A stretch of DNA of 63,557 nt, the filler included, from Bigelowiella natans CCMP2755 (taxonomy: Eukaryota > Protista > Cercozoa), in assembly GCA_000320545.1 (NCBI GenBank). It is 4 parts of 4 records of this genome, joined end to end, with 100 filler letters (N's around TTAATTAATTAA, not from the genome) between each part and the next. Parts side by side here need not be neighbours in the genome. Positions count along the whole stretch, not along the records: positions 1 to 29,132 come from ADNK01000987.1; 3 more parts are not named here. One strand, written 5' to 3'. The notes under the pieces were generated by a model. That model made no database searches. It was not told the origin of the DNA and worked only from the letters and a program-made list of their open reading frames with translations. The translations under genes and the position numbers were made by a program. Each line of letters begins with the position of its first letter. Position 1 is the first letter of the stretch. Positions 3,296 through 19,276 of the stretch are shown here, one piece after another.

Positions 3296-5587
3296 GCATC
3301 ATCATCCTCAGCATCATCATCGTAATATGATCAAGTAACGACGACTGACGAAACCTTACCATAGCAGCGGTGTCCCCCTGCAAGATGGCAGGGCTTGTTG
3401 TATTGCGATGAGAGAAACAATAGTTATGTTGGGGGGGAGGAAGAGGGAAGAGAACCAGGAGGAAGTGTAAGAACATCGCAACGATGCCAGCGACGATTGA
3501 CTTGTGGGAATGGCATAATTCAGAAGAATTTCTGCTCTTACTACCACTACTACTACTACTTCTACTTCTTCACTATTTCTGCTAGTTACCTCGGGAAGAA
3601 AAAAGACGCCATCCCTTCAATATGAATCAAACACATACCACAACGAACACGGAGGAGAAGGAGGAGGAGGAGGAGGAGGAGGAGGAGTCACTCCATAGCA
3701 AAAAACAGACTAAATGGCGTTGGCATGCAACAACACGCACATACACACGATATACAACATGCGTGATGACTCTCCTCTCTCTTTCGGAGATAATAGCTGC
3801 GAGCAGCTGTGTATTTGATTCTCATTTACTGCTTGAAAATGTGCAAACAAAGATATTCCTCCCTCCTGCCCTCAACCTACGACTCGATGATTGCTGCTGC
3901 TTGCTAGCACTGCTGCTACTGCAACTACTTTGACCTCTCTTCCCGTCACGACTCCTCGTCAGCTTCACCTCTACACATCAAAGAAAACGATCTACTCAAG
4001 ATCATGCCCTCAAGAGCAGCATGTACAGCGGCGTCCTTAACATACAAAACAAAGGCCGGCGAGTCTGTGCGTGCACGCATATATGGCTTCTGACCGATGC
4101 GAAACGACACGATAGCACTAACGACGCGTACATGAAGCGGTGTAGCATATCTGATATATCACTCGCTGGACGTTGACAAAACCTGGCACGGTATTTTCCC
4201 TGATTCCTTCGGCAAACTCGATATGCGCTGAGGGGGCGAGCAGCCTCGCGCCTCTCTACTCACCATAGGAACAAGACAGCAAGAGGAAGAGGAAGAGGAA
4301 GAAGAAGAAGAAGGAAAAAAAGCAGAACCAGATTGAGAGTCATGATGATGAAGGAGACACCATCTTCAGAATGCCTCCACAAATGCTTCTTCATGTTTTG
4401 ATTCACCGATGAACCTGATGCTGATAAGGCCCCACAGCGGTGAAATCCTCCCGGTCCCTGCTGCTGGAGTTTGCGCCATATTGAGGAACACGAAGAAGAT
4501 CATGAGTGACAAATCAGTGATAAAGAATGGCAGGACTACAGTAGTTGTGGAGATGGCGGTAGTATGAGATTATACATTTATCATTATGATTTGTACTGTT
4601 GCTTATATTATCGTATTTTATTTTTCCAAAACGTAAGTTGTACGCACGGGCTTCGTGGAGGCCTACTTAACATATTTCCCGAGCCTGAAACAGGCCAATT
4701 TTAGAGCATTATCATGCGCGCTCGCGATATGCATACAGAAATGCACTGTACACGGAACACAGCTTCACGACAGGTGAAGAGTTTCTCAACCGTGCATTTT
4801 GCCTATTTGCGTAGAAGGGTCAGCTTGAGATGACCTCCACATTCCAGCTTGAATCTGCATTTTTGTTTGTTTTTAAAATCAAAACAAGCAATACAAACAC
4901 ACACAAACACACACACACACTCATGTTGTGTCCTGATCACTGGTATTTTGTTTCCCCTTCTATAGCCATGAATCGCATGGATATGAAAGGACACAAAGGT
5001 CATGATGCATGCATGCGTAGGTGATAATCGCGTACAAACTTCACCATATGGGCGGCCATTCTATTTTCACGCGAGCACCTATGCCTCAGAAACAGAATTG
5101 CCTGCAACGAGGAAATGGCAAGCGGAGGGGAGCATCGTCAAGGTGTAATTCTGATGATTGAGCGGTTCATTTAATAAGACAGCGGCTGACCAGGACAGTC
5201 GACATCAAAGCAATGGGACCCGCAGCCTATATTGTGAACAACATCACCTCACGCCTTGACAGTCATAAATGGCGCTGTATGAGAGGGGACACGATATACC
5301 GCAGGTACGAGTTGGAATTCGAAGTTACCTTTCTCATCCTCCCCGGACGGCGCATCATAGCAGCCATATTCAGCCGTTCGTCGTGTGGATTGTATCTTTT
5401 TCTTTCTAGCGGTTGAGCAGATGGTGGTTGTAGTGATGTGAGTTCATCCCTGTCGCTGCAGTTGCTTGGAGGAGGGGAGAGAGGAGAAGCAATCATCGAC
5501 GACGTTGCAGAACTCGACGTGAGCACCTGATTTACGATATTTATTTTTCTCCGAAGAATGTGATTGCTACTAACTTGCGCTCACCAT
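2088..5587 (-). CDS. psb28: Photosystem II assembly factor Psb28, nucleus-encoded and multi-exon; 5' leader exons uncertain
   Basis: Minus-strand exons between ~4250 and 2088 splice to AHIEFAEGIRENTVPEVKLTRSRDGKRGMASFFFPSPAILQGDTAAMVTGMFLVDDEGVLETTNIEAQFKEGMPLHLHAKYVMKTTADWDRFMRFMGKYAEENDLGFQ..., carrying the Psb28 hallmarks VKLTRSRDG, TGM..DDEG and WDRFMRFM..YA. Stop TAA at 2088-2090. Start at ATG 5587 is tentative. Confidence 0.88.
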
Positions 5588-10636: not shown

Positions 10637-10739
10637 CTAGAGTGCTGTTGTTGTACGTGGTCTTCGAGTGCATGGCCGCTCCGATGAACAGAGCCGAACG
10701 AAGCCCGTGAACATACCATAGAGGTCATCATCGCTCATC

Positions 10740-11400
10740 CGGATATTCAATAACTAGAAGATTGTAACCTATCTAGCTATGTATCCATGTGAGCGAATAC
10801 ATGTGTACGCACATGCATGATGTTAACGCGTATATACGTAGCCAGACACACCTAGACACGTCAACGCGTACCCAGATGTGATAGACACATCTAGACATGT
10901 CGATGTAGATGTCGTCCATGCTGGCATGTCTGATGTGTCTAGATCTGCTAGCTAGCTAGAGATGTCTTTCACACTCTAGCACTGTCTAGCTGTGCATGCA
11001 AGGCTAGAAGGCCTCTCCACATGCACTAGTGCAGCGTGCACGTGCTGTTGTGCATTATAGACATGTAATACCTATTATGTGCGGTCTAGATAGTTGCTTA
11101 CTGTACTTTCCATGTCCAGATGTGGACACGCAAAAAAGCGAACATTTCGTTGTAGATGACACTCTTTTCTAGATTCTCGATTTGCTGCTCTGAATTCGCT
11201 GCATGAATCAAATCAACATGTTTCACATGCACATCGCAATCAACAACGTTGCATTCACATGTGTCAAGATGAGCAAAAAGTAGAAGCAATGTGCTAGCAT
11301 GCTTCATTGATCGATGATGTGGGGCAAGAGTACGAGCGATGATGACAATGATGGAGATGCTGCGCCCATGCAACATCAAAGTCATTACAAACGTGGCATG
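10740..11400. other. TpG/CpA-rich degenerate intergenic island with dense NNNN-CTAG-NNNN insertions
   Basis: Eight perfect 4-bp-duplication/CTAG motifs plus one CTGG variant in 10769-11033; rich in CATG, TGCA and ACAC. Confidence 0.85.
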
Positions 11401-11543
11401 GAGATCACTGTATTGGTGAACACTGACATTCGTTCAACTCCAGAAAAATCGACGATCTGAACCTATGGCTTCTTGGCAACGACACCATTGCTCTATGAGT
11501 TCACTCCTGTGGTCCATTTAAACTCTTCTTTCGCTACCCTTTC

Positions 11544-12197
11544 CTATATCTTTCGAGATTTTCCTTCGAAAATGGCTGTGTACCGGCTCTCTGACCGGCG
11601 ACTATCACCTCGAGCCTCTTGGATCAATGTTATTATCAATATGAGTGCCACGACTGTCATCACAGTCGTGATGATGACCACTACTAAGGCTATCAAGGCC
11701 TCCCAGAAATCCTTGTCATTCAAGCCCTGTCGGTAAGTTTTCGGGTTTTTGATGATTTCAAAGAGTGTTTTAGCTGACTGGGGAATTCGAGAAAATTGGG
11801 AAAATTGTGAATGCCATGTAGCTGCTGCAGGGGAGAATGCCGATGTGGTCAGCTGCGGAGTCTCCTCTTCTTTCGTCGTTTCTGGACTTTGACTTTTGAT
11901 GGAAACCGCATTCTCTTCGTTCCATGACTCACTATCGGCAATTTCAGTGTTTTTATTGCGAAGGCTGTGCTCCCGTAGACGATTCTCGCCTCCAACCTTC
12001 ATCTCTAGCGTCCTCAGGGCGCTCGGGAAACTGAAGGCCTCCCCTCCCCCCTCCACCTTCACGTCGCTCGAGAGCTCAAGTCCCGTTCCAGCGGAAGCTT
12101 CCATTTTCCCGCTTCCAGTGTCGTCGACCCAAGCGCACTTCACAGTGAGGACAACACCAAGGAGGAGGAGGGCTAGCCTCATCGTCATGACGCCCAT
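11544..12197 (-). CDS. Intronless type I membrane protein (217 aa), unknown function
   Basis: First true ATG at 12197 gives a signal peptide (MGVMTMRLALLLLGVVLTVKCA), an acidic/Ser-rich ectodomain, a C-terminal TM helix (ALIALVVVIITTVMTVVALILIITLI) and a short tail with a YxxPhi motif (YTAI). Confidence 0.7.
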   Translation of the reverse strand: MGVMTMRLALLLLGVVLTVKCAWVDDTGSGKMEASAGTGLELSSDVKVEGGGEAFSFPSALRTLEMKVGGENRLREHSLRNKNTEIADSESWNEENAVSIKSQSPETTKEEETPQLTTSAFSPAAATWHSQFSQFSRIPQSAKTLFEIIKNPKTYRQGLNDKDFWEALIALVVVIITTVMTVVALILIITLIQEARGDSRRSESRYTAIFEGKSRKI

Positions 12198-12479
12198 TGC
12201 AGCCTCTTGATGTTTCTTGGGAGGAGCACCAACGCCGAGTGGCTGCCGAGCACTAAGTTGCGCCAGTGCCTTGGGTTTGAAGCATCGCGACACAAAAAAA
12301 GAGTTGTCGCAGGGGACAACTCGATCTCAGTTTCTCCTGTGCGCTGCAAGAAATCTTCGAGCACGGGCAGCGGGTGCGCGTCCGATCATCCTTGTTCACG
12401 CTTCTTCTTTCTTTCTTTCCTCCTCCTTTCAACTCATCAACCTCAATGCCGATGTATTCATTCTGTCGTTTCACGTGGC

Positions 12480-13400
12480 TATGTGTGAACCCTTTCTTGT
12501 GTAGGAAAGTCTGCACCATTGGAATTGCTTCATTCCTTGTGACAAATGGAGTGAGCAGGCTAGCAGGGCCCAGAGGGCTGCACAGGGCTGCATGTTTGTT
12601 GAGCAGATGTTTGTTCAGAGGTGGCACACATGCAGGGACATACATGTCCATCCATGTGCACATGGGTACAACACACACAGGTGTGTGGGGTGCGTGTCCT
12701 GGTTGCATCACGCGTGCGCGCCTGCGAGCCTTGACCTCACATGGTTGGGGATCGAGCTTCGAAATGAGTCAACCCCAACAGCATGCACAAACACGTCAAG
12801 TCCCCGCGGTCTACCGCGGTCTAGCTGGACAGTTTGCACTGAGTGCATTGCTCCGGTTTTTGCTTCACAGGCTTGTCCAGCTTGTTAGACTTTGACACAC
12901 AAACTTTGTTGGATCTTGGAAGTGAACACAGAACCAACCGATCGACCAATGGTTCTAGCTGTGATTGTTGAGCAGTGCAGTGTGCGCATTTTGCTGCTAG
13001 ACTGTGCGCGTGTTCATTGTCAATAGTCATCAACATCATGTACAAATGGCACAAAACTGTGACACCACACTGTCAATTTGACATCGCATGCACACATTAT
13101 GTTGTGAACGATGGCACACGCATGTACGTAGACATTGCACGCATGGCAAAATTTGGTTCGCATTCAAATGTAACAACTGACGGCACATCTTTCCTTTGAA
13201 TGCACACGTCTACGTGCACACTCGAATCGAAAATGCGACTGCACCACATACATCATACTTATATCACATTCTTCTTTATATTTGTCTGTTGTACATTGTA
13301 TTGCAACACAGATTTTAGACTGGAGAGTAATCTCATTTTCGAATATGTAGAGCATTGCTTTCAAATTTCCGTAAGGCTACAATGTTTACTCACATGATTC
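12480..13400. other. TpA-depleted degenerate intergenic island
   Basis: TA is scarce, TG/CA and CpG are abundant; CAGG-CTAG-CAGG at 12556-12567 plus several 5-10 bp duplications. Confidence 0.8.
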
Positions 13401-13543
13401 TAGCAGTAGGATGTAACTAGTTGATGATGACGTCGTGAATGGAGGGGAGGAAGGGATGGGATATATCAGCAAGAGGAAAATCGCGAGTATTAGAAGTTGA
13501 ACCAGCATAAATAATTACAGGAAGGAGGAGAACCTCCTGCTAA

Positions 13544-15310
13544 TCAGCCGTTGTGCTGGTTCCACCTGAGTGTCTGCAAGCTTGGGTAAGTATCCCATAT
13601 CTTCTCCTCTAGATGGATGTTGGGCTCACCAATATCAAGGTAAAGTTCTTTCAGCTTAGGTGCCTTTGGTAACGATCTAAGTATATCCTCTTGGGTCAGA
13701 AAGAAACCATTTACCTTCAGTTCTGTCATCGTCGACAACTGCTGTTGCTGCCCCTGATGGTGCATAATCTCGTCGTTCCTTTCTATCCCCCCTCTTCCGG
13801 CTCCTCCTCCTACAATTCTTCTAATTTTCACTTCCTCTTCTTCTTCTTCTTCATCTCCTCCATAGCTCTGTGGGATCTCCCCCCTCACCTTCAGCGCCTT
13901 TATCACATTCCGACCGAAGTCATGGGCAACTGCGTTCATGACACACTCGCTGCATAGCGCCCAATGAAATATCTCTAAATTTGGCATGATCATCGTCGGT
14001 AGGATGCTTCGTATGTCTAAGAAGATGAGAGTGCGTAGTGTCCGATGGCGAACCGTGTGCTTACGGTGACAAATCTCCTCGTTTTCAAGATGCTCGCATT
14101 TTATGAGGAAGAGGTCGGGATCATCGCATGCTATTTTAAGCGACTCGAGCACACTGCACGTGTCCAGTAGGCTGCTAAGCGTATTCATAGTGAGCGCATC
14201 GTTCAATAAAAGCTCAAGGCTCCGCAACTTTGGAAACAGCGGTAGGAAAGGCAGCAGAGAGTTGGTAAAAGGAACCGTCAGTTTGAGGAGCTGTGAGAAA
14301 TTTTGGCAGAATTTCTTCGTGAACCTTGAGGCGCATATCGGTCCAATGTCGAGGGACCGCATACTTGGCAGCGGACATTCTGCTAGCAGGCTGATGATCT
14401 CTTGACACGTCTTCGAGCTGACATCCCTAGCCTTCCCGGCAAGTTGGAGGTGTTCCAAAGCGCGTTGGTTTTGAGTGATGAGCGTTCGTAATGCCGATAG
14501 GCCTTCGATGCTGTCGTTGAAGCTCGACTTTTTCAGCATCTCCCAGCCGCTCACTTTACCCGTTCTCATATCCACCAAATCCCGCCCTTTCCTCATCCTC
14601 GGCTCAAACCATTCCAAGGGGACACGGATACTCCTGAGATTTCGGAACCGCCGCCACAGCATCGTCCGCATAGTGATTGAAGGCCTGGGTAAGGGTGAGA
14701 GATCTAAGACCTTCTTTTCGGCGCAAAATCTTTTGACCGCGTGGCGAAAGTACTTGCAAGATGCCTCGAGATTACCGGTGTGCGGCCATAAGAATACCAG
14801 AATCGGCGCTAAAAGGTCATATTGGACCTTATCCAGTCGCTGCGGAGGAGAACTGCTAGACAAGGATGAGGAGGATGAACTCTTCATGTCATCGACGTCA
14901 TCGAAAGGGACTGGAGTGTCTTCATACCGCCCCGTCAGGGTGTCTATGCTGTCATCACCTCTATTTCTTTTTTTACCCCCATTTCTTACACTGGGAAAAT
15001 CATTGATCTTTCTCTGTTTTTTTTTGTCGCCACGATTTCTCTGGCAGAACGTAGTCTCTTCATCAGCTTCATACCATGGAGGCGTTCTAGCCTTCGGTTC
15101 GTTCACGAGAGGAGTCACGGGGGGCTCAACTTTCATGTAAGAACGACGAGGTGAAGGAGTTGAGTAATGGATGTTTCTCATCCGCTTTCGTTTTCTTTCC
15201 CGAAAAACGCGGGGATTGTGCATACAGCCTCCAGGACCGCAAACACTATCGTCCTGTGCCTCAATGTTCCCCCCTCCGTCATTAGGATGGGGAAGCTTCT
15301 GCATCTGCAT
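13544..15310 (-). CDS. Intronless 588-aa leucine-rich-repeat (RNI/F-box-associated-like) protein
   Basis: Long uninterrupted ORF with a basic, NLS-like disordered N-terminus (RERKRKR, KKKQRK) and repeated LxxLxL motifs (NLRSIRV, ALEHLQL, SMRSLDI, KLRSLELL, VLESLKI, TLRTLIF, KLKELYL, SLQTLRW). Confidence 0.7.
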   Translation of the reverse strand: MQMQKLPHPNDGGGNIEAQDDSVCGPGGCMHNPRVFRERKRKRMRNIHYSTPSPRRSYMKVEPPVTPLVNEPKARTPPWYEADEETTFCQRNRGDKKKQRKINDFPSVRNGGKKRNRGDDSIDTLTGRYEDTPVPFDDVDDMKSSSSSSLSSSSPPQRLDKVQYDLLAPILVFLWPHTGNLEASCKYFRHAVKRFCAEKKVLDLSPLPRPSITMRTMLWRRFRNLRSIRVPLEWFEPRMRKGRDLVDMRTGKVSGWEMLKKSSFNDSIEGLSALRTLITQNQRALEHLQLAGKARDVSSKTCQEIISLLAECPLPSMRSLDIGPICASRFTKKFCQNFSQLLKLTVPFTNSLLPFLPLFPKLRSLELLLNDALTMNTLSSLLDTCSVLESLKIACDDPDLFLIKCEHLENEEICHRKHTVRHRTLRTLIFLDIRSILPTMIMPNLEIFHWALCSECVMNAVAHDFGRNVIKALKVRGEIPQSYGGDEEEEEEEVKIRRIVGGGAGRGGIERNDEIMHHQGQQQQLSTMTELKVNGFFLTQEDILRSLPKAPKLKELYLDIGEPNIHLEEKIWDTYPSLQTLRWNQHNG

Positions 15311-15835
15311 AAGGCCTCTTTTACGAGTCCAGGCCCATTACTCAGGAAAGCCTTCCTGGAAACTGACCCCAAAGTTGCATGGAGCTTATCATTTTTCAAG
15401 TCGTAGAATAAAAATCCATCATAATTTTGGATGTTTTCTCTTTGTGTGACTTCTCGTGGCATATTTTCACTAAAGAGGCTGACTCCTGCGGCATCGCGAC
15501 ACGATTTTCGCGTGTCCAAACGAGGAAATGCCATGCACATTCACATTGTACGATTTTGACTCCGTTCTTTGCGCGCGGGCCGTTCGCAAAAAACAAGAGA
15601 AAACCGCGCGGAACCACCTGCTTTCTGGAAGAAAACCGGCCGCCAATTCCCTTTTTGCTCGGAAAACGCATTGGGTACGAGAAAAGGGCCCTAGAAGATA
15701 CCAAGAGATCACACCGATTGTTAAACAGGCAAAATAAGAGTTTGCAAAATAACCCCTGCCACTAACGGTTTTTTTTTTGCACGAATTTGTTCTCCAGCTA
15801 AATGTAGTTCTTGTTACATTTTGGAAATGTAGTTC

Positions 15836-15997
15836 TTCATCATTGTTCATTGTTCAACCAGTTCGAGGCACTGCATTTTGCACGCTGCAAGTGTCTTGCA
15901 ACACTTTGGAAATGTAGTTTTTCATCATTGTTTCATTGTTTCATTGTTTCATTGTTCATTGTTCTTCATCATTGTTCATTGTTCATTGTTCATTGTT
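15836..15997. repeat. Degenerate (TTCATTG/TTTCATTG)n tandem repeat
   Basis: Direct reading of the sequence: ...ttcattgttcattgttcattgtt... Confidence 0.85.
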
Positions 15998-16108
15998 CCA
16001 GCAAGATTCAAACTCCTCGTCTCTCCTCTCCCCAATTCAACTAGCTGAACGCAGCTAAGCGTCACTTCCCCCGTCCACGCTTCGACACAGTCTCAACACT
16101 GTTCTCTC

Positions 16109-16540
16109 ATGGGGGCAAACTTAGCCAAAGCAGCCAAGAATGCAGAAAGGAACAAAGATTGGAGCAAGGTGCTCAAGCTGTTGTCCAAGCGTGCAGACAT
16201 CGAGCAAACGGACAAAGATGCGTCATGAAGATGCTGTTGGAGAAGAAGACACAACCTCGAAGCCGTTGATGCGGATGTTCGAATTCTGTTGAACGGGGCG
16301 TCTCATGAGGGTCACATGCTGGACGTCGTGAAGACGCTCCAGCGCTGTTGCTAGGTTGGAGAAGAGTGTTCCAGTGTTCACAAGGCATGTCAACATCGAA
16401 CCCGCATTGATGCGGACGGTTGGACTCCGTTGTTTGGTTGTGTTCGGCGTCTCGGAGGGGTCATCTGCACGCTCACGCCGTGAAGACGCTGTTGGAGAAG
16501 AAGGCCAACATCGACTAGTCGAGACGACCGATCGATGAAT
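16109..16540 (+). pseudogene. Ankyrin-repeat pseudogene disrupted by small insertions
   Basis: ATG 16109 gives MGANLAKAAKNAERNKDWSKVLKLLSKRADIEQTDKD. Frame-broken fragments follow: VVKTLLEK, NIE..IDADGWTPLF..ASRRGHL..AVKTLLEKKANIE, matching the ankyrin consensus G.TPL..A...GH..VV..LL...A.I. Confidence 0.8.
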
Positions 16541-17182
16541 TCGGTGCGACCATCATCAAGTTTCTTTCTTTTTTTCTTTCTGAGAACTCCTGGGGACAGC
16601 CCGCTCCATGCTAGCATGAACTGTCATGGACAACGAAATTCATTGTGGACAATGCTAGAATGTGATGCAACATGCATTCAATGTGTGTCACGTTGCCATG
16701 TCCATGATGACTTGCTGTGCTCGCAAGTGTCCAAGTGCATCCAACTTCGTCCGCAAATCGTGATGCTGTGCGTGCGATGCGAAACCAATGGCTGCCAAAA
16801 ACTCCCTTCGAGTTTGATCTATGCAAAGATGCTGTGTGGTGTGACTGACACGGCGTGCATGCGGCACGCACATTGCCAGATTACGTGATTGCACATGCAG
16901 TTGATCTAGCGATGCGATGGCCGTGCTGCGCACTGCTGAACACAAATTGCATTGAATCGATCGAACGACGACCACGTGTGCAGTATGGTAGCTAGCCATC
17001 CATCTAGCGGAATGCTGGACAGCATCAGAATGGCGTGACATGCTTGACACATGCAGTGCACCCCAGCTAGCCAGCATCCCAGCATGCACATCAAGATTCC
17101 TGCACATTGCACATGCACAGAGCAAGCTAGCAAGGGATGCAATGTCGGGCAACTCCCTGATGACCATCGATTTTGTTGCTCA

Positions 17183-19276
17183 TCAATCTATGTTGTCGCC
17201 ATCGCACCAATGAGGACCATTGCCATTGTGTCTACCCGGAGTGAACCAATCACGGCAACTCTCTGCTGCATCCCGGCATGAACTCAACTTCATGCTGTTC
17301 GCATAGATCTTGCAATTCCCCATGTACTCAATTGCTGGATCCATGGAGTATTGCAGATCCAAGTCATCTGGAATGAACAAGCCGCGGAGACCGCAATGCT
17401 GAGGAAAACTTGTAATCACGTTGTCAGCTTTACCCATTCCATGGCTCCCTTTGAATCTGTGCCCATGATTGAAAGCCACAACAATAAGCGTATCACCGCG
17501 TTTCGGTGTCCATCGGCGACACTGGATGTGTGAACGACGATCGTACCACCCATAGCTTCCTCTTTCTTCTCCGTTCCCTACTCCCGCAGCTGTCGAGCCC
17601 CTCATCGCAGCCGGTTCCTTTTCTAGGCAAGGAGCTTCTATGACACACACTGGAGATAGCTGTTCCTTCATACCCACACCAGATTTTGTGGATGGTGATA
17701 ACGACGACGATTTTGTGGCTTGGACAATGTGGTCCAGTATGTGTTTTTTAACATCTTCAAGTGTAGATCCGAAATGCTCAGGAATGTACGGAAGTTTGGT
17801 TACGTGCGAGGAATTTGGATGTGCTTGCTGCTCAAGTTTCGTGAGTCCTAAGATATCTCGGGAGACATCTGGTCCGGAAAATGCCCAGAATGACTGGGTA
17901 CGACTCTGGTGAGCGTGAAATACAAACTGTCCAGGGATAAATGAGCCGTTGTGTCGAAATGTGTGGGAGTACCAAAATACACATGACTTTTGAGGGGGAA
18001 TTCCATATACTAACGGACCATGCCTCTGAGCTGGAGCAATAAACGATATCTTTGAGCTAACTCCCTTTTGCGGCCTCTTTCGTGTCCAAGCGATAGCAAT
18101 CTCCATGTAGTATTCCATTGTTGGGGATCCTTTTGGCCTTACATCATCGAGAACAAAATCTACATAAAGCGGGCTCGTAATGCGATGTGCTACGCCATTT
18201 GGAAGCATGCGCACCAAACAGTTTATCCCACCATAGGCACCGTGGCATTCAGAATCTCCATGCGCTTCAATAATCGGGGCAAGCCATGATTTCCGGGTGT
18301 GTATGTGGAAGTGGTGGATGTGAATTGGAGGATGGCCTAAAGGTTCTCCGTTTTTGTCGGTGGGAAAGGTTGCAGAGCCTACCACGAAAAGTTCTCCTCC
18401 ATTGGCTTTGATTTCTTTGCTGAGTAAGCCGATATTCTTGATGGAGCCGCCTACAGACCAGTCATAGCCTCCTGTTCCAGATATTGGACCCACACGTTCA
18501 ATTGTCCAATGTATGGTCTCATTGCCGCCCCTAGTAAACCCGTTATCTCGTGACGACGAATTGGAGAAAGAATACCCACCTGTTCCTCCAAGATTATTAC
18601 ATCGCTGCCTAAACATCCTTGATTGTTGAATAGCTTTGGCAGATCTCATTGGACAGTGATTGGGAGGCTGACACAAACCCCAATAGTGATACTTATTACT
18701 GTTATACGCATTGTCGTCTGTGTAATGGTCGAGAGTGGAATGATGATCCTTTAGGGTGGTCCATCTGCAACTTGACCGAAGCTGAAAATACGCCCTTGCA
18801 TTCGAAAAATTTTTGTCACCGCCATTCACCCAAGGTACCCAATCTTGTTCTGCTGCGGGATCATTAATCCCGGCCGCTTTGGTAAGACGTACTATCTCAG
18901 CTGTTGGGCGGTCACTAAACATTTTGCAATCGAATTTCATTCCAGAAGGTATGTCATCTTCCAAAGGCGAACTCACCATCGAACCCATTATAATTGCAAG
19001 AATTGTGAGAAATGATGAGAAAATGAAGACTTTCGATGCCATAGACGTGTGATTGACCTCGCAGCACCATCTCCCTAAGTTTTTATTTGAAGATGGTGAT
19101 GTTTCTATTTTGGGCAGCGCTTTCTTCTCTCTGACTGATTTGTCGAGAGTCTTCGTTGGAGAAATGATTTTTGGTAAGCTGACAGAAGGTCTCAAAAGAG
19201 CACCATTTTCTGAGTCATCGCTTTCTATATCTACTAGGCTGCCCTGCGGGTCAGCACTCGTTTCCGCTCCTTTCAT
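17183..19276 (-). CDS. Intronless 697-aa type II membrane protein with His-rich metal-binding motifs (possibly copper monooxygenase-like)
   Basis: N-terminal cytosolic tail, one TM helix (VFIFSSFLTILAIIMGSMV) and a Cys-containing lumenal domain with HPPIHIHHFHIH, AHGDSEC, FHAHQ and FPQHC motifs. Confidence 0.65.
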   Translation of the reverse strand: MKGAETSADPQGSLVDIESDDSENGALLRPSVSLPKIISPTKTLDKSVREKKALPKIETSPSSNKNLGRWCCEVNHTSMASKVFIFSSFLTILAIIMGSMVSSPLEDDIPSGMKFDCKMFSDRPTAEIVRLTKAAGINDPAAEQDWVPWVNGGDKNFSNARAYFQLRSSCRWTTLKDHHSTLDHYTDDNAYNSNKYHYWGLCQPPNHCPMRSAKAIQQSRMFRQRCNNLGGTGGYSFSNSSSRDNGFTRGGNETIHWTIERVGPISGTGGYDWSVGGSIKNIGLLSKEIKANGGELFVVGSATFPTDKNGEPLGHPPIHIHHFHIHTRKSWLAPIIEAHGDSECHGAYGGINCLVRMLPNGVAHRITSPLYVDFVLDDVRPKGSPTMEYYMEIAIAWTRKRPQKGVSSKISFIAPAQRHGPLVYGIPPQKSCVFWYSHTFRHNGSFIPGQFVFHAHQSRTQSFWAFSGPDVSRDILGLTKLEQQAHPNSSHVTKLPYIPEHFGSTLEDVKKHILDHIVQATKSSSLSPSTKSGVGMKEQLSPVCVIEAPCLEKEPAAMRGSTAAGVGNGEERGSYGWYDRRSHIQCRRWTPKRGDTLIVVAFNHGHRFKGSHGMGKADNVITSFPQHCGLRGLFIPDDLDLQYSMDPAIEYMGNCKIYANSMKLSSCRDAAESCRDWFTPGRHNGNGPHWCDGDNID

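Follow-up and report, generated by a model that had tools for sequence, protein, structure and literature searches.

Known excision footprints and the CTAG scars of Bigelowiella natans

The closest described systems are transposons of the Tc1/mariner/pogo group, in which cleavage of the non-transferred strand falls a few nucleotides within the element and joining of the ends leaves canonical footprints composed of the target duplication, the terminal 2-4 nt of the element, and the second copy of the duplication (PMC6943129). Sleeping Beauty, for example, leaves TA-CAG-TA or TA-CTG-TA, and elements with a 2-nt offset leave TA-CATG-TA, a palindromic 4-nt centre being the outcome expected of a 2-nt offset on inverted-repeat ends. 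Here we analyze a signature of the same general form, NNNN-CTAG-NNNN with two identical 4-mers (below, the scar), in the genome of the cercozoan Bigelowiella natans CCMP2755. It is described in a stretch of 63,557 nucleotides of assembly GCA_000320545.1 (below, the window; four parts joined by filler letters, with positions 1 to 29,132 coming from ADNK01000987.1) and in the nuclear assembly as a whole. We put the chances at about even that the scars are excision footprints of a putative cut-and-paste transposon that duplicates 4 bp of its target and has the termini 5'-CT...AG-3'.

As in the Tc1/mariner/pogo footprints, both copies of the duplication are kept, and what may be the terminal nucleotides of an element stand between them (PMC6943129). 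Excision that leaves terminal nucleotides of the element on the flanks is the only established route to a duplication, a short constant sequence and the duplication again, and the analogy drawn in the original prediction (duplication, 2 nt, 2 nt, duplication) points to the only known chemistry giving the form of the scar. The difference lies in the target, since the Tc1/mariner duplication is TA, whereas in the B. natans scars nearly any sequence of 4 bp (sometimes 5-6) may be duplicated. In addition, neither DDE_3 nor mariner transposases were found in B. natans, and the pogo-like gene detected there lies in a repeat whose visible boundary neither adjoins a TA nor starts with CT.

The piggyBac elements resemble the scars in their 4-bp duplication and in an excision precise enough for one uniform product. 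They differ in that they target TTAA and leave seamlessly, with no footprint (PMC7351741); in B. natans the target is M-N-N-K, 8 bp are left behind, and the piggyBac profile finds nothing in the genome. The hAT elements make 8-bp duplications and leave hairpin-derived footprints that depend on the flank, whereas in B. natans 4 bp are duplicated and the centre stays the same irrespective of the flank. A duplication of the same length as in the scars is made by the superfamilies Sola1-3, Ginger1, Chapaev and Academ (3-4 bp); their termini as known to us are not CT...AG, and we know of no described excision footprint for them. Finally, trapped topoisomerase II cleavage in yeast causes de novo 2-4 bp duplications. 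It resembles the scars in its 5' stagger of 4 nt, its weakly symmetric site and the filling-in of both ends, but its product is a plain tandem duplication without CTAG, and the islands where the B. natans scars cluster show no enrichment of plain 4-bp duplications.

Abundance of flanked CTAG sites

The window piece contains 79 CTAG tetramers, of which 15 have exact 4-bp direct repeats on both sides (the canonical scars listed below). The analytic expectation for this piece is 0.3 such sites, and 200 dinucleotide-preserving shuffles gave a mean of 0.295 and a maximum of 2, in agreement with the predicted excess over shuffled controls. Relaxing the centre to C[TC][AG]G brings the count to 19, compared with a shuffle mean of 1.3, the extra sites being at 10917, 11112, 16335, and 16367. 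The nine sites originally listed between 10769 and 11022, including CATG-CTGG-CATG at 10917, were each found exactly as written, and listing every CTAG with its flanks confirmed the recurrence at 12556 and at 16335-17134. In a comparison of all 256 4-bp centres, CTAG was enriched 35-fold, the only other enrichment being in dinucleotide microsatellites and frame-shifted readings of CTAG runs. Similarly, in a scan of repeat lengths of 2-9 bp and centre lengths of 0-6 bp, only CTAG with 4-5 bp stood out, and the remainder were microsatellites. Repeats of 5 bp occur at 2062, 12565, and 12872. The latter two are likely scars, with the proviso that the site at 12872 is an isolated single occurrence and could be due to chance; the site at 2062, with a CCGG centre and distant from any island, may be a chance match.

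The scars of this piece are as follows (positions along the window; all features are unstranded).

10769..11033, island 1: eight canonical scars and one variant; single-copy; same in two DNA-run contigs
10769, canonical CTAT-CTAG-CTAT, island 1
10848, canonical ACAC-CTAG-ACAC, island 1
10887, canonical ACAT-CTAG-ACAT, island 1
10917, variant CATG-CTGG-CATG, island 1
10948, canonical CTAG-CTAG-CTAG, island 1
10972, canonical CACT-CTAG-CACT, island 1; overlaps the 10982 scar
10982, canonical CTGT-CTAG-CTGT, island 1; overlaps the 10972 scar
11000, canonical AAGG-CTAG-AAGG, island 1
11022, canonical TGCA-CTAG-TGCA, island 1
11112..11123, variant ATGT-CCAG-ATGT, at the edge of island 1
12556..12567, canonical CAGG-CTAG-CAGG, sequence match
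12565..12578, variant with 5-bp duplication AGGGC-CCAG-AGGGC; overlaps the 12556 scar
12872..12885, possible variant with 5-bp duplication CTTGT-CCAG-CTTGT, a lone site
16335..16346, variant CGCT-CCAG-CGCT, missing from two paralogous repeat units
16347..16358, canonical GTTG-CTAG-GTTG, only GTTG in two paralogous units; its TAG terminates the reading-frame piece 16289-16354
16367..16378, variant TGTT-CCAG-TGTT, sequence match
16511..16522, canonical TCGA-CTAG-TCGA; its TAG terminates the reading-frame piece 16420-16518; kept in the RNA contig 16002-16650
16607..16618, canonical CATG-CTAG-CATG, sequence match
16651..16662, canonical AATG-CTAG-AATG, sequence match
17063..17074, canonical CCAG-CTAG-CCAG, sequence match
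17123..17134, canonical CAAG-CTAG-CAAG, about 50 bp past the stop codon of the minus-strand reading frame 17183-19276

The signature pervades the nuclear assembly (91.4 Mb, 3,736 contigs). In 200 kb chosen without regard to the motif, 68 of the 529 CTAG have exact 4-bp flanking repeats, where 2 are expected. Genome-wide, CATG-CTAG-CATG occurs at 3,828 sites (control, 7) and ACAC-CTAG-ACAC at 141 (control, 18), and CATG makes up approximately one tenth of the duplicated 4-mers in the sample. Both routes of extrapolation from the sample agree on 3-4 x 10^4 canonical sites in the genome, and inclusion of the variants would bring the total to about 4-5 x 10^4 scars. This is a density of about one scar per 2-3 kb, for which, with no visible element, we know of no precedent.

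Empty sites and direction of change

Paralogous copies reveal the state before the event. In a dispersed repeat, one copy reads AGAA directly followed by CCAC where another reads AGAA-CTAG-AGAA-CCAC. Similarly, when three internal repeat units of an open reading frame (ORF) remnant in the window were aligned, two of them were found to read GCT directly followed by GTTGGAGAAG, and the third to carry 16 extra bases, CGCT-CCAG-CGCT and then GTTG-CTAG-GTTG, that is, two adjacent events, one variant and one canonical. Because the paralogous copies keep an empty NNNN, the scars are true 8-bp insertions, and the insertion with target-site duplication that had been proposed is borne out; three comparisons in all show that the scar derives from an empty site with one copy of NNNN and no CTAG.

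The ORF remnant (16109-16700, plus strand) is transcribed and decayed. It starts with MGANLAK, contains the internal repeats ...VVKTLQRC... and ...AVKTLLEKKANID, and is interrupted by stops as well as by two or more scars of the CTAG type; the pieces 16289-16354 and 16420-16518 are each terminated by the TAG of a scar. Its ankyrin-like appearance received no Pfam support from the pieces.

The scars were also compared with contigs from two Illumina-era DNA runs (2021 and 2025), which match positions 10700-14229 and 15970-16699 without difference or gap. With 99-100% of sampled words in common, these runs give no view of other strains, and the strain of the assembly may be the source of either one. 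A contig from a run guessed to be RNA spans 16002-16650 unchanged, so the scars stay in transcripts. Two local differences were noted. In both DNA runs one contig is 3 letters short at 10945, next to the (CTAG)3 run, and another contig passes straight from 10791 to 10975, so that 183 bp of island 1 are missing from it; its shorter side has only 21 letters. Minor alleles, paralogous k-mers or assembly-graph noise could each account for these differences.

Duplication, target and centre of the scar

The repeat abutting CTAG is 4 bp long in 82 sites, 5 bp in 9 and 6 bp in 2 (approximately 89% and 10% for 4 and 5 bp, and rarely 6 bp), repeats of 3 bp being at chance level. The control palindromes GATC, CATG, TCGA, CCGG, and AATT, taken as centres, gave no flanking-repeat signal. 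Among 83 sites there are 49 distinct duplicated 4-mers, of which CATG and CTAG are the commonest and TTAA is absent. The target reconstructed from 152 sites is weakly two-fold symmetric, c/M-N-N-K/g: position 1 is C in 55%, A in 30%, T in 12% and G in 3%, and position 4 mirrors it with G in 56%, T in 26%, A in 13% and C in 5%; the base that precedes the duplication tends to be C, and the one that follows it G or C. Such a symmetry typifies strand transfer by a transposase or integrase. The duplication, originally called a non-specific one of 4 bp, is indeed mostly of this length, but approximately 10% of sites have 5 bp, and the skew at positions 1 and 4 shows it to be not wholly non-specific.

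The insert is equally constrained. When lengths of 1-300 bp between the repeats were considered, none but that of CTAG was enriched; within islands, neither plain 4-bp tandem duplications nor any 1-8 bp centres except CTAG and its frame shifts are in excess. Flanks with one mismatch are about twice as frequent as expected by chance (54 observed, 28.5 expected), and in a larger sample the mismatches are evenly distributed across the four positions, as expected of ordinary decay. From the ratio of perfect to one-mismatch flanks, the mean age of the scars may be put roughly at a few percent divergence. Palindromic flanks of the hairpin type were considered and rejected, nearly all of their excess (about 21 of 26 sites) being due to duplicated 4-mers with a palindromic sequence of their own.

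Examination of the twelve one-step variants of CTAG revealed clear enrichment only for CTGG (21 sites) and its reverse complement CCAG (33 sites), the others being neither clearly enriched nor co-localised with scars. Of the CTGG/CCAG sites, 61% lie within 300 bp of canonical scars, compared with the 14% of the sample that is island, and they have the same preference for CATG, which the other variants lack. Genome-wide, the CATG duplication surrounds CTAG in 3,828 cases, CTGG or CCAG in 1,013, and CCGG in 9. The variant centre accounts for approximately 20% of cases, and the predicted C[TC][AG]G behaviour of the centre holds, CCGG being nearly lacking. Independent variation of the two halves of the centre was rejected, since it predicts approximately 67 CCGG sites where 9 are observed, and for the same reason the variant is one-sided. 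Point mutation is an unlikely source, as the variants reach approximately 26% of the canonical count compared with 4-5% expected from the decay of the flanks. The one-sided variant matches an element with one altered end and fits two distinct element ends; it argues against one symmetric inserted oligonucleotide and against simple independent errors on both sides.

Clustering in islands

Neighbouring scars lie less than 50 bp apart in 37% of cases and less than 200 bp apart in 77%, forming islands of 0.2-0.8 kb that are spaced roughly 7 kb apart on a long contig. Many events are nested or overlapping, later insertions using bases made by earlier ones, which shows repeated action. For instance, 10972-10993 reads CACT-CTAG-CA followed by CTGT-CTAG-CTGT, the second event having used 2 bp of the duplicated copy of the first, and runs of (CTAG)3-4 fit insertion into an earlier CTAG. 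The islands are approximately 2.5-fold enriched in CATG, TGCA, and GCAC/GTGC, which is too little for target sequence alone to explain the clustering. In the islands generally (for example, window 10780-11060 and locus L017 3660-4260), the words CATG, TGCA, GTGCAC, and TGCATG are 2-6-fold enriched even apart from the scars; these motif-rich stretches may be terminators, regulatory arrays or open chromatin.

Exon, intron and intergenic DNA each make up roughly one third of the B. natans genome (PMC12730881). The scars are depleted in long open frames: frames of at least 200 codons span 7% of the restored sites, compared with 27.5% of random positions. A crude and weak ORF-based test of whether convergent gene ends are preferred revealed no strong rule, with 8 convergent, 8 tandem and 4 divergent cases and 9 within an ORF, and RNA coverage suggests that islands 1 and 3 overlie transcript 3' ends. 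A strict absence from genes, as first described, does not hold, since two scars lie within the decayed repeat ORF and several in transcribed 3' regions.

Next to the last scar of the piece lies an uninterrupted 697-amino-acid ORF (17183-19276, minus strand) with no Pfam hit. Its weak neighbours in a protein atlas are SURNod19 and copper type II monooxygenase-like proteins (scores 0.81-0.85), which is a lead only.

A putative cut-and-paste element

A symmetric target with a duplication of fixed length bears the signature of a dimeric DDE-type enzyme making two strand transfers. Given the duplication and the target symmetry, the putative element would insert through a pair of strand transfers set 4 bp apart, sometimes 5 and rarely 6, at targets of the form c/M-N-N-K/g, with CATG and CTAG favoured. 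At excision, the non-transferred strand would be cut 2 nt inside each end, as in Tc1/mariner elements, so that each flank would keep the terminal dinucleotide of the element, and end joining would give the duplication, CT, AG, and the duplication again. Some of the elements, with a single base changed at one terminus (CT...GG), would leave CTGG/CCAG scars and no CCGG. Each scar makes a new CTAG, and often a second CNNG, both of them preferred targets, and these, together with local re-insertion or open chromatin, might concentrate the events in non-coding islands of 0.2-0.8 kb. In a clonal lineage, a few conservative copies hopping for a long time could have produced 4-5 x 10^4 scars without a rise in copy number, which would explain how so many scars can coexist with no visible element; by now the element may have become rare or died out, or it may have escaped assembly. 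The element itself, its termini and the 2-nt offset are what we infer here, and the original reading of the scars as excision products is upheld as regards the 8-bp insertion, the target symmetry, the C[TC][AG]G centre and the Tc1/mariner-like form, but not as regards an element or a transposase.

Several observations weigh against this reading. The scar is far more uniform than usual end-joining footprints; among the superfamilies described, we know of none in which such a footprint goes with a 4-bp duplication. A full-text literature search, including Bigelowiella by name, found no description of the signature, and no empty/scar polymorphism (8-bp indel alleles) was seen in the two DNA runs, which are possibly of one strain. 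The search for the element covered the window and 40 further loci, approximately 0.29 Mb with about 160 scars. As this sample is 0.3% of the genome, a low-copy element may remain. The sample contained no full-length element starting with CT, ending with AG and flanked by a 4-bp duplication, and none starting with CT and bounded by inverted repeats with such a duplication. N4-CT...AG-N4 was at the control level at every length up to 300 bp, N4-CTAG...CTAG-N4 showed no excess, and none of the candidates had multi-copy termini except an unrelated high-copy retroposon-like family. Nor did a search for inverted repeats with duplications, made without the CT requirement, find anything above the control. 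No short element remnants were found inside islands, and self-comparison of the sample showed it to be poor in repeats other than the one retroposon-like family.

Profile searches of the whole genome added to these difficulties. The piggyBac profile PF13843 found nothing (its positive control was uninformative), and no match was found to the Tc1-type DDE_3 or the mariner Transposase_1 profile. Pogo-like DDE_1 and hAT-like ORFs were detected, but no transposase could be tied to the scars. The only multi-copy DNA-transposase gene found, the pogo-like one, lies in a repeat whose visible boundary starts with CG, has no TA beside it and has no inverted copy inside the locus. To judge from the one end read, the pogo-like repeat is an unlikely source of the scars.

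The pogo-like ORF of 594 amino acids is intact at two loci that are 99.4% identical, L042 (1096-2880, minus strand) and L043, on contigs C2661 and C2845. Part of the right-hand flank of this repeat, 457 bp long, also matches contigs C1948 and C2335, and a perfect palindrome of 29+29 nt is present at L042 3200-3258. No relatives of the transposase were found in metagenome contigs. The hAT-like ORFs occupy three loci, L044 (193-1803, plus strand), L045 (1411-3222, minus strand) and L046; they have the hAT dimerisation domain, one with a weak DUF659 hit, and each is apparently single-copy.

The retroposon-like family is dispersed in very high copy number. It is represented in the window at 15809-15998 (core 15858-15932) and also in loci L031-L041; its read depth is 15,000-43,000, compared with approximately 80 for single-copy DNA, and a genome search gave at least 663 candidates, many of them 98-100% identical. 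The 3' end, which leads into a (TCATTGT)n heptamer tail, is common to the copies, and their 5' truncation varies (up to about 330 bp or more), so that the family looks like a non-long-terminal-repeat or short-interspersed-element type of retroposon. It is transcribed, and several copies end just upstream of an ATG, the window copy approximately 110 bp before the ATG at 16109. As a mobile partner of the scars it was rejected, since it has a variable 5' truncation and a heptamer tail rather than CT...AG ends.

Alternative explanations

An origin without any transposon, which we hold to be unlikely, would involve break and repair: a host nuclease or domesticated transposase would cut weakly palindromic sites in chromatin islands with a 4-nt (sometimes 5-nt) 5' stagger, and fill-in, addition of a dinucleotide to each 3' end and ligation would write CTAG. 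That no element was seen among approximately 160 scars, that the product is extremely uniform, and that the events are strongly regional and recur within a few bp would all be accounted for, and a symmetric target suits a dimeric nuclease as well as a transposase. Yet no enzyme is known to add a fixed CT to DNA ends, filled-in 4-nt breaks alone would give the plain NNNN-NNNN duplications that are not enriched in the islands, and the one-sided CTGG/CCAG class is awkward for a symmetric addition to both ends. An improbable explanation is that the scars derive from an rve-type integrase of a retroelement, virophage or Polinton-like element, acting with a 4-6 bp duplication, either with the insert almost entirely lost except for its terminal dinucleotides or by abortive integration of a very short substrate. 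Endogenous virophage-like elements have been reported in B. natans. The spread of 4-, 5- and 6-bp duplications and the weakly palindromic target resemble the behaviour of integrases, and retroviral integration does generate 4-6 bp duplications at weak palindromes (PMC4422553). Against such an origin, there is no known route that removes an integrated element and leaves exactly 2+2 nt. The known ends of integrase-borne elements are TG...CA or AG...TC rather than CT...AG, and solo terminal repeats or partial remnants were not found at scar positions in the sample.

Explanations that need no dedicated enzyme fare worse. Slippage or point mutation, such as micro-duplication around an existing CTAG or degeneration of a tandem repeat, could draw on the (CTAG)n arrays in the islands, but the flanking 4-mers vary at nearly every site while the centre is constant, Tandem Repeats Finder reported no array over the islands, one of the 256 centres is enriched 35-fold, and the paralogs without any CTAG effectively refute this very improbable origin. 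A microsatellite or tandem repeat was rejected in the same way, because there is no head-to-tail unit and only the short (CTAG)3-4 runs are tandem. Amplification of a single unit, raised at the outset as a concern, is excluded as well, the 301 bp around island 1 occurring once in the genome. A sequencing, cloning or assembly artefact, for instance from adaptor or linker ligation, might be suspected because several common cloning enzymes leave CTAG overhangs. The identical contigs of 2021 and 2025 and the scars carried by the RNA contig exclude a library artefact, and the mutational decay, target preference, nesting and co-localised variants of the sites leave such a source next to no probability. 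Even together, slippage and artefact deserve very little credence.

Implications

The scars are thus best read as excision scars of an element whose signature is described in none of the literature searched, with a real chance of something more unusual. A host-encoded or domesticated enzyme that writes CTAG, itself a doubtful proposition, would amount to programmed, sequence-defined insertional mutagenesis or marking without known precedent. In a less radical version, a hyperactive, very low-copy transposon of an undescribed superfamily may have left approximately 5 x 10^4 uniform scars as its sole visible trace.

Each scar adds a TAG stop on both strands and a frame shift, disabling whatever is hit, and between genes the scars build islands rich in CTAG and GCTAGC. 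The expression N4-C[TC][AG]G-N4 is a simple marker for the comparison of strains, the dating of events and the search of other Rhizaria. If no element exists, the signature marks an as yet unknown DNA break-and-repair activity. If the scars are excision footprints, they would be the densest and most uniform record of cut-and-paste transposition known to us: an estimated 4-5 x 10^4 events would have inserted about 0.4 Mb into a genome where DNA transposons are otherwise scarce, with eight DDE transposase genes reported (PMC12730881). They would then point to an undescribed type of element that makes 4-bp duplications, has CT...AG ends and leaves footprints of near-perfect fidelity, and would provide a natural map of the sites where it could land.

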